Part shown: one piece after another, positions 40,423 to 43,400 of the stretch | Position numbering within the stretch: position 1 is the first letter of the stretch | How the letters are laid out: each line of letters starts with the position of its first letter | Assembly: GCA_977016875.1 (NCBI GenBank) | Contig: CDRNST010000011.1 | Span: 1,426,001 to 1,490,000, forward strand | Source of the DNA: Pavona decussata | Lineage: Eukaryota | Direction: 5' to 3' | DNA length: 64,000 nt | Made by a program: the position numbers and the translations under genes | The notes under the pieces: model-generated | Databases searched by the model: none | Told to the model about the DNA's origin: nothing | The model's input: only the letters and a program-made list of their open reading frames with translations

Positions 40423-43400
40423 TTAATCCCTGGTAAGGTATACAGTGAGTATGCCAATCAGAAATAGCACCAGTACTCCGAACGTCACCAGGAAGAATCT
40501 TTTCACGGCAGACCGTGTATTGCTCCCTTCTTGCACTATCTTATCCAGGAGATCAGAAGTTACTGCCACGTAAAGTTTGTGGAAAATGTCCTTGGACGGT
40601 GAAAGCAGTTCCTCAGGAGTGCAACCTGAAAAAAAAATCCCTATACTGTCATATGTTTGTGTCTAAGGTGTTTCGCAACATTTCTAAGTTGATGCGAGGT
40701 ATTACTGTATGACAATTCAGTTACTACTGCAAACGAGAGTAATGGTAAGTAAGGATCGAAACATTTTCATACCTTGTATGTATCATTTGAAGAGCATAGA
40801 GCATAACTGACATATTAATAGTGCTTTTTTATTACTTTTTGTTGTTTTAGCTCAAATTCACAAGATTTTTTGCCTTTGGCCCTAACTTCCTTCAGCAAAT
40901 GTTGCCTTAATGCTTTATCCGCACTTTGTTCTGTGACAAAAATGGACATCTTGTTCATAATGATAGGTTTTTTGTCGCAAAAGAAGCCCAAAGAAGTGGA
41001 TAAAATACTCATGTCTGGGGCAATGTTTCCCAAACTGAAAGGAATTGAAGGTTACATGCAAAAAAAATTCAGCGAATCTGAGCTGAAAAAAATAAAAGTG
41101 ATCTAAAGGTGCTTAATAGGTTGGTTTTGCCTCGAGCCCTTCATTTAGAAAAGTTGCTGCATTTAAACCAGAAGCAATTCATCTAGGTGATAATATTACT
41201 TCCAAGTGGTTGTGCAGTGCACAAATGCAAACTTTTTAAATTTGTATTAAATAGTTACATATTTGGAAAAGTCACTGGTGGGGTAAATTTTGAAAGAATT
41301 AATTGTGCGGGAAAATGTTCTTCTCAGCAACTTATTTTAGCAATTTTTGAATTCAAAACAGTAGCAACATTCACAATACAATATTACAACCCACAAAATA
41401 TGGAGACAGCATGGTTCAGTGGTTAGAGTGCTGGACTTGTAATCTGGAGGCCCTGAGTTCAACTCGGCTCTGACCACTTGGATTTGTTTCACAGTAACCC
41501 CATTTTCAAATCCAAGGCCACGCTTTGTAAATAGTCAACTGGTTTACCTCCCACCAGTTGGGATTTTTAATATACATTCAGCCTGTTTATGTATTTCACT
41601 GATTTATAGTGTCCCCAATTAGCACTACAGAGCTAAATACTTCACATAAAGTCATTTATTTATTAATTTATTTTATATCATGCCATAATAATGTGGTATC
41701 TCAATATTTTTACTCAACCCACCCCTCTCTGAGTAAAATAATGTCAGACAGGTATCAAAGACTTGTTGATACACAAACAGAGTTGCTGTTTTGTAGTGGA
41801 GTAATAAGCCTTACCTTGATGCAGTTCTTCATACATACTATGCGCCATTTGTCCATTGAATGTCTTGTGAATACACGGTGTAAGTACAGGCTCACAAAGA
41901 GTATAGTTAAGGTGAATAGCATCTCTTAGAACACACTGCCACTGACAAAAGCTGTGTGCTGCTTGAAGATCAAAAGGCTGAGAGGAACGTTTCCCTTGGA
42001 TCCTTTTGCCCTTCTCTTCTGTCAAATCTTCTTCCAAGGTTGGCTTAACACAACAACACAGTAATGCTACGAGGTGATTCATTTTCACTAATGGCTGTGC
42101 ATGACTGATGAGATAACGGAGGGATGCTGTGATTAACTTGAACCTCTCTGGCAACAACCTGATGTGAGTTGTGTCAGCATCGAGCGCAAATAGCAAAAAA
42201 TGTAATCTTTCATCAGCATCAAGGTGTGGGATTAGACTTCGACTTGGGACCACACCCTCTTCACAGGGTGCAACTTTTGACTGTTTCATGGTCATATCTT
42301 CTCTGTCCCATTCATGGATTGTCATTCTGTTTCTCTTTCCTTCATCTTCTCCAACATTGTTTAGAACACTGAAAACAAACTGCCTAAGCTGCAGAGAACA
42401 GTGGTTTGCTGATATTTCCAGAAAGTTTTCAGCTTGTACATTAAGGAAGTATTTTCCCCCTGTTAAACCGCTTATGCATTTGATGGAAAACTGCCCTGCA
42501 CGAAACCGATGCAAAACCCATTGCTCAATCTCATGGCCATTCTGAGTTCTCAAAGAGCTGCAAATGGTGCCACTTTCAAAATAGCCTAACAAATTTGATT
42601 CTTTGATGTTATATTCCTGAAGAGAAAGCTCAACAGCTTGCTGCAGTTCATCTCTGCTTTTCATTGATGGGATCACTTGCAGAGCAGATTTGAGAGCCTC
42701 CTCTTGAGAACATGAACTGGGTAGCTCAGACAACATGTTAGCAATACTTGCAAACACTTCTCTTTTCCTAAAACGACTTGCCACCTGAATGGGACTCACT
42801 GCTTGGTGAAACACTGCTAGTGTGTCTGAACTGACATAATCGTTGCCTGCCAAAGAAGCAAACAGAGGAGTCAATTCTGCACAAATTCGAAGGTGTGATG
42901 CCAGTTTACACCGATAGAAAATATGGCCTGTTAATCGATCCAAGTTCCAGTGGAGAAAAGGCAGTGGAATGTAACCTGCTTGGATGTCAAATATGAAGAA
43001 GTCACTGTCACTGCTTAGGACTGGGCAGTTCCATGCTGCAGCCAGGGAGGCAATTTCTGCGTCGGCTTCACTGTTGGGAAGATAAAAGAAGATTGCATCT
43101 CACATCATCAATAAGTTGTTAACTCGTGAATGCGCGCATGCGCAATGAACGAGTTATAGCGATAGCTGACTCTCGACTTGGTCGATCAGTCGATCAGTCG
43201 ATCAGGCGATCAGTCGGTTTTGTCGTTAACTTTCGGGCGTGCGCAGTGAATGAGTTTTAAATTCAATTAGTGGAAAAAAACACGCGAACATTTGTTGTTC
43301 ATGGCGCATCAGGAAATTCTTATTCAATATGTAGAGAATAATTTGACGATCATTTAGTGCAAGAATGGCGATTTTTCGTTCAATCTGAGCAAAGTTTCAA

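Follow-up and report, generated by a model that had tools for sequence, protein, structure and literature searches.

The 64,000-nt stretch of DNA analysed here (the window) carries two tandem copies of ASTE1, which encodes a structure-specific DNA-repair nuclease of the asteroid family. Both copies, hereafter A and B, lie on the minus strand. A first-pass annotation had proposed that B encodes a nuclease with a hydrophobic C-terminus placed like a membrane anchor, while the product of A is soluble. This raises the question of whether B is a working gene whose product has exchanged a soluble tail for a transmembrane helix and, if so, to which membrane it would be tethered and how often such tails have arisen.

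Structure and expression of the ASTE1-B gene

A and B are the only two ASTE1 copies in this genome. Each contains introns, at identical positions and in identical phases (Table 1). Counted exon by exon, the product of B has 631 residues and that of A 636. The acceptor of B exon 3 is an AG at 40627-40626, behind a polypyrimidine tract, and the exon begins at 40625; the donor of exon 2 (CAAG/GTAAGG) follows 41815. The last base of exon 2 (G) and the first two bases of exon 3 form a codon, joining the exons in frame. From 40623, exon 3 runs for 66 codons: a PEELL motif, a KLY.AVT.DLLDK block, a 12-residue linker ending in KR, 21 uncharged residues, TRD and a TAA stop (40425-40423). The acceptor, the phase and the common PEELL / KLY.AVT.DLLDK block bear out the earlier claim that this exon splices in frame and is homologous to exon 3 of A. 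The reading of the minus strand also agreed with the annotated 21 uncharged hydrophobic residues followed by TRD only. The basic residues said to precede the helix are present in the window allele as KR, but the K is polymorphic, with E found in two related genomes (L001 and L002) and in some RNA contigs. Copy A ends, as had been described, in a charged, basic tail, its exon 3 reading as a basic linker, NRFAFL (33405-33425) and an acidic end.

Table 1. Position of the ASTE1 features and of the associated mLST8 relic in the window
Feature	Position	Strand	Remarks
ASTE1-B exon 1	45583..46019	minus	ATG at 46019; XPG_N with IDG and FDG (Pfam XPG_N, E=1.9e-4); donor after 45583; junction 45583/43070 in contigs of 3 runs
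ASTE1-B exon 2	41815..43070	minus	EAD, DSD, GNDY; Asteroid/XPG_I_2 (Pfam XPG_I_2); 418 codons open; match to own genome 100%
ASTE1-B intron 2	40626..41814	minus	GT..AG; skipped in contigs of 4/4 runs, 4 studies
ASTE1-B exon 3, coding part and stop	40423..40625	minus	First half homologous to exon 3 of A; second half a short linker, hydrophobic helix and TRD; orthologous exons in L001 and L002
ASTE1-B predicted transmembrane segment	40435..40497	minus	21 residues, ~608-628 of 631 (counted exon by exon); GRAVY 2.68; Hessa sum -3.8 kcal/mol; identical in L001, one change in L002
ASTE1-B 3′ untranslated region	40200..40422 at least (examined stretch ends at 40200)	minus	RNA-type contigs continuous over 40200-40623
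ASTE1-A exon 1	37555..37973	minus	69% identity with B exon 1; Pfam XPG_N
ASTE1-A exon 2	34885..36143	minus	77% identity with B exon 2; splice sites at the codon phases of B
ASTE1-A exon 3	33381..33613	minus	Ancestral tail: basic linker, NRFAFL, acidic end; motif family-wide
mLST8 relic upstream of A: degenerate duplicate of mLST8 exon 1 and the B/mLST8 intergenic region	38278..38551	plus	blastn 78-79% to 46287-46344 and 46537-46599

Expression was followed over window positions 40200-46150 in contigs from runs labelled ‘RNA?’, a label that is a guess; these contigs show the use of exon 3, not the share of each isoform. The 41815/40625 junction, which the annotation had singled out for an RNA check, was exact in contigs of all four runs, each from a different study. 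The segment skipped at this junction ends in CT..AC on the plus strand, that is, in GT..AG on the minus strand, and one 877-base contig spanning it reaches 182 bases into exon 2. The junction of exons 1 and 2 (45583/43070), which skips 43071-45582 with GT..AG on the gene strand, was found in three of the four runs. Since the genome's only two ASTE1 copies both have introns, intron-less B contigs must derive from RNA. B is transcribed, and spliced as predicted.

Some contigs depart from this pattern. Run X1 contains low-depth contigs within intron 2 of B (window 40598-41344), which could be unspliced RNA or an intron-retaining, tail-less isoform; were they retained-intron RNA, the product would end ~22 residues past exon 2, without the membrane tail. 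Run X7 yielded one low-depth contig (window 40627/41839) with B exon 3 and the end of exon 2, in which 22 differing letters are A-like (LQEELRQ). It may reflect an allele, past conversion or chimeric assembly via shared words. Depth over intron 1 of B (window 43000-45000) reached hundreds to thousands in all four runs, indicating that this intron holds expressed repeats. Intron 1 of copy A contains a reverse-transcriptase-like ORF on the plus strand (36385-37095).

The nuclease core was examined in both copies. The Pfam XPG_N model (PF00752) matched exon 1 of either copy barely above its cut-off of 22, with 22.3 bits for B and 22.7 bits for A, but hundreds of asteroid homologs back the assignment. 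PF12813 matched B exon 2, and homologs carry Asteroid_N (PF27698). In an alignment of 53 full-length relatives, B keeps 13 of the 13 invariant and 21 of the 22 near-invariant positions, the exception being a Y to F change, while A keeps them all. The IDG, FDG, EAD, DSD and GNDY motifs, annotated as intact, were located in both copies. L001 and L002 hold the same ASTE1 pair in the same order, and dN/dS values among B orthologs were 0.22-0.36, with A in the same range. By these comparisons, purifying selection acts over the whole length of B, which can be regarded as a functional, expressed ASTE1 paralog with intact catalytic residues.

The hydrophobic tail as a predicted membrane anchor

The segment encoded at 40497-40435 has a mean Kyte-Doolittle value of 2.68, which only 69 of the 39,394 six-frame 21-mers of the window reach. 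Over 19 residues, the maximum elsewhere is 1.54 in B, and does not exceed 1.6 in either copy. The summed value of the segment on the biological (Hessa) scale was about -3.8 kcal/mol; both scales were our own calculation, with the Hessa values entered by hand. The N-terminus of B is polar, and a 19-residue Kyte-Doolittle scan gave no other hydrophobic segment and no signal peptide. A single hydrophobic C-terminal helix, three residues beyond it and nothing comparable upstream make up the tail-anchor geometry that the annotation had proposed. As only these three residues follow it and a signal peptide is lacking, the helix would leave the ribosome only once translation has ended, so insertion would be post-translational.

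The segment is also conserved. It is identical in L001 and differs in L002 by one residue (I to T), the two further differences from L002 being synonymous, so that the hydrophobicity of the tail is retained in the orthologous exons, as the annotation had anticipated for a genuine anchor. Two within-species variants seen in the RNA contigs inside the segment (40453 and 40461) are synonymous as well. The linker directly before the helix varies freely among relatives.

For structure modelling, P0300, the closest full-length tailed relative, was used as a stand-in for B, which was itself searched exon by exon. The AlphaFold2 model of P0300 (mean pLDDT 89.8) has a confident globular body up to about residue 590, including the first half of exon 3, and the solved folds nearest to this body are those of EXO1, FEN1 and XPG/Rad2. 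Past the body, the model shows a disordered linker and then a lone, low-confidence helix that is not set against the body.

In mammalian cells, high hydrophobicity of the transmembrane domain and low tail charge direct tail-anchored proteins to the ER, whereas lower hydrophobicity and positive tails mark mitochondrial anchors, and peroxisomal ones carry a strongly positive tail (PMC5450235). All the coral hydrophobic tails collected here (see below) have helices with GRAVY values of 2.4-3.2 and tail charges of -1 to +1. High helix hydrophobicity and a tail charge near zero would make the ER, and the outer nuclear membrane continuous with it, the likeliest target; our best guess for B is therefore this membrane rather than mitochondria or peroxisomes, by a targeting rule derived from mammalian and yeast cells. 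Peroxisomes, the symbiosome membrane and the outer membrane of mitochondria were also considered as sites for the anchor of B. Tail-anchored proteins get to all of these membranes, the targeting rules come from cells other than those of cnidarians, and the window allele carries KR right before the helix. However, that K is E in the relatives, and the hydrophobicity and charge of the coral tails do not match those of mitochondrial or peroxisomal anchors (PMC5450235), which makes such a destination quite improbable.

Hydrophobic ASTE1 tails in other corals and the history of the duplication

The tail of copy A is that of the family. Among 129 full-length family members, 46, including frog ASTE1 and a sea anemone protein, have NRFxxL followed by acidic residues within the last 40 residues, often with C.V before it (e.g. 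P0129, P0137 and P0124), and just one other protein has a hydrophobic C-terminus. A has both the basic linker and the NRFxxL-acidic motif; B has neither. Since A has retained the tail typical of the family, the membrane tail of B is the derived state, in line with its annotated gain. We know of no function assigned to the NRFxxL-acidic motif. SERBP1/HABP4 has a closely similar motif at its N-terminus, a likeness that gives a lead to a possible common binding partner. No relic of the old tail was found 3′ of the stop codon of B, unlike at L010 (below). The exact register of the B helix on the NRFAFL of A was not retained as a result, since DNA alignment, protein alignment and inspection by eye gave three different registers.

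Full-text literature searches (ASTE1 transmembrane; asteroid homolog in coral) found no paper on a membrane-bound ASTE1. The annotation's remark that it knew of no described membrane-anchored asteroid protein thus stood as regards the literature, but the tail is not private to this genome: tailed paralogs are present in other corals. The tailed set comprises P0300/P0304, P0033, P0283, P0354-P0356 and loci L006 and L007. In robust-clade corals, hydrophobic-tailed ASTE1 was found in Oculina patagonica (ACROYT_G037924), in Orbicella faveolata (XP_020624173.1) and in at least three further assembly sequences; hydrophobic tails also end the relatives of these proteins in loci L006 and L007, as well as the exon-3 ORFs P0354-P0356. 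Two tailed paralogs are in NCBI as ‘asteroid homolog 1-like’, with the tail unremarked. In another coral lineage, the P0300/P0304 transcripts run from KNRFAF straight into 16 hydrophobic residues, and the sister paralog retains NRFAFLCD. The Acropora-type and Porites-type loci sampled had non-hydrophobic tails only.

The Oculina, Orbicella and P0300/P0304 tails resemble that of B in belonging to the same family, in a hydrophobic run that starts at the former NRFxxL site, and in hydrophobicity and charge. Their helix sequences and linker lengths differ from those of B, none is annotated or discussed as membrane-bound, and the robust-clade tailed group forms a separate paralog clade. ASTE1 of robust-clade corals falls into three paralog clades, whose members often share a contig (L005, L006 and L007; P0112 and P0114). 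The tailed copy adjoins an ankyrin/SAM gene in L005 and a SAM-domain gene in L007, and a 722-residue Oculina paralog is extended at its C-terminus by a long, unrelated stretch.

L010, a contig of the P0300/P0304 lineage, has mLST8 exon 1, a tailed copy and an NRF copy in the same order as the window. Here the DNA of the helix resembles small duplications of T-rich, RFAF-coding words plus a frameshift (L010:12360-12614), the old LCDMGEQ now being read as LQHGRAM, and the 3′ UTR contains a further remnant of the former tail (12546-12614).

Trees were built to place B relative to these paralogs, the groups tested being named after the first tree inspected. With the whole of exon 2, A and B formed a pair (support 98/94) and the robust-clade tailed group was placed elsewhere (99/98); constraining B to join that group was 145 log-likelihood units worse (AU test, p=3.9e-57). 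Synonymous divergence between A and B (34885-36143 against 41815-43070) is uneven, however, with dS of ~0.2-0.3 at the ends of exon 2 and ~1.0 in its middle. Together with the conflict between trees of the whole exon and of its middle, this suggests that the tandem copies have undergone gene conversion. In the middle part, the one least affected by conversion, B grouped with the L010-lineage tailed paralog (94/85), and all robust-clade sequences fell into one clade (99/100). With the whole exon, constraining B together with the L010-type copy was mildly disfavoured (p=0.0145).

Two histories were discarded on these results. A single origin of the coral hydrophobic tails was rejected both with the whole exon and with its middle part (p=4.6e-5 for the latter). 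A recent duplication private to this lineage as the source of A and B, suggested by the whole-exon tree, was dropped in view of the uneven dS, of the middle-part tree and of the order of mLST8, tailed copy and NRF copy shared with L010. The trees lead us to conclude that hydrophobic tails were gained at least twice in corals. B and the L010-type tailed copy are probably orthologs with tails built differently, by one gain or two within that group. The mLST8 relic upstream of A (Table 1), which covers the promoter and exon 1 region, indicates that the duplicated unit carried a piece of the head-to-head neighbour. A similar relic is present in L001, and extra copies of mLST8 exon 1 lie beside ASTE1 copies in L001, L008 and L009.

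These data bear on whether the hydrophobic end is an anchor at all. It might instead be neutral or mildly harmful decay of the tail in a redundant duplicate, a signal for degradation, or a helix packed against the rest of the protein. Decay of duplicates commonly starts at their ends, T-rich drift readily yields hydrophobic codons, and the tail of the L010 lineage did arise via small duplications and a frameshift. Yet B is expressed and selection is purifying over its length; the helix is better conserved than the linker, with mostly synonymous changes; the same outcome has evolved at least twice; and the P0300 model, as far as it can be transferred to B, leaves the helix unpacked from the body. 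We regard an explanation without an anchor as very improbable.

A candidate endomembrane nuclease

The reading we favour, and hold to be likely, is that B is an expressed ASTE1 paralog whose soluble tail has been swapped for a C-terminal transmembrane helix, making it a tail-anchored protein most probably of the ER/outer nuclear membrane; we infer its membrane insertion, topology, ER targeting and any substrate. The ancestral tail (basic linker, NRFxxL and acidic end) would have given way to a short linker and a single transmembrane helix. The protein would be inserted post-translationally as a tail-anchored protein, via the GET/TRC40 route to the ER, and its ~600-residue nuclease would face the cytosol or nucleoplasm on a ~12-residue tether. 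Copy A, with the ancestral tail, presumably retains the ancestral nuclear repair role, and B would be a relocalised nuclease minus the conserved C-terminal motif.

The relationship to known ASTE1/asteroid proteins is close, with XPG_N, Asteroid/XPG_I_2 and the conserved acidic residues all shared, and the relative that was modelled having an EXO1/FEN1-like fold; the difference is a transmembrane helix where the family has the basic linker and NRFxxL-acidic motif. To our knowledge, no member of the FEN1/XPG/EXO1/ASTE1 superfamily is an integral membrane protein.

Passage to the inner nuclear membrane is usually size-limited, and the extramembrane domain of B, at ~68 kDa, lies at or above the usual limit. 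This bears on a further possibility, in which the same anchor serves a nuclear function: after insertion in the ER, B would move by diffusion to the envelope and act from the inner nuclear membrane on DNA ends or persistent breaks at the nuclear periphery, its repair role being kept. The ER is continuous with the nuclear envelope, and the catalytic core of B is unchanged. Human ASTE1 is reported to be recruited by SHLD2 and to act with shieldin in trimming 3′ overhangs at breaks (PMC9894118, PMC10398656). Besides the size of its domain, however, B has lost NRFxxL and the basic linker, which would be the likeliest nuclear-import element. Deprived of linker and motif and membrane-bound on a 12-residue tether, B would be unable to trim overhangs in the same way as ASTE1. 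We consider a working site at the inner nuclear membrane unlikely, and return to a nuclease of the ER/outer nuclear membrane.

For such an enzyme, mammalian TREX1, a 3′-5′ DNase, offers a known parallel in layout. TREX1 has a soluble paralog, TREX2, an arrangement that parallels B with its soluble neighbour A. TREX1 is tail-anchored, removes cytosolic DNA and restrains cGAS/STING (PMC11904002). Its layout is the one predicted for the product of B, with a single C-terminal helix tethering a DNase to the ER on the cytosolic side. The likeness is of layout only: TREX1 is a DEDDh exonuclease with a long linker and B a predicted FEN1-like endonuclease, with unrelated fold and chemistry. Cnidarians have cGAS-like receptors and STING (PMC9980059). 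As a speculation with a small chance of being right, drawn from this analogy, reef corals might at least twice have made an ASTE1 duplicate into an ER-anchored, cytosol-facing, TREX1-like nuclease that clears self, viral or symbiont DNA from the cytosol and sets the threshold of cGAS-like receptor/STING signalling.

The window thus holds a soluble and a predicted membrane-tethered copy of one nuclease side by side, the tethered form being expressed and conserved, and the separate gain in a second coral clade argues for selection rather than accident. The case offers a clear, testable example of a transmembrane helix seeded by a short conserved motif at the C-terminus. B is a candidate for nucleic-acid handling at coral endomembranes, which may be relevant to DNA sensing, viruses and symbiosis.
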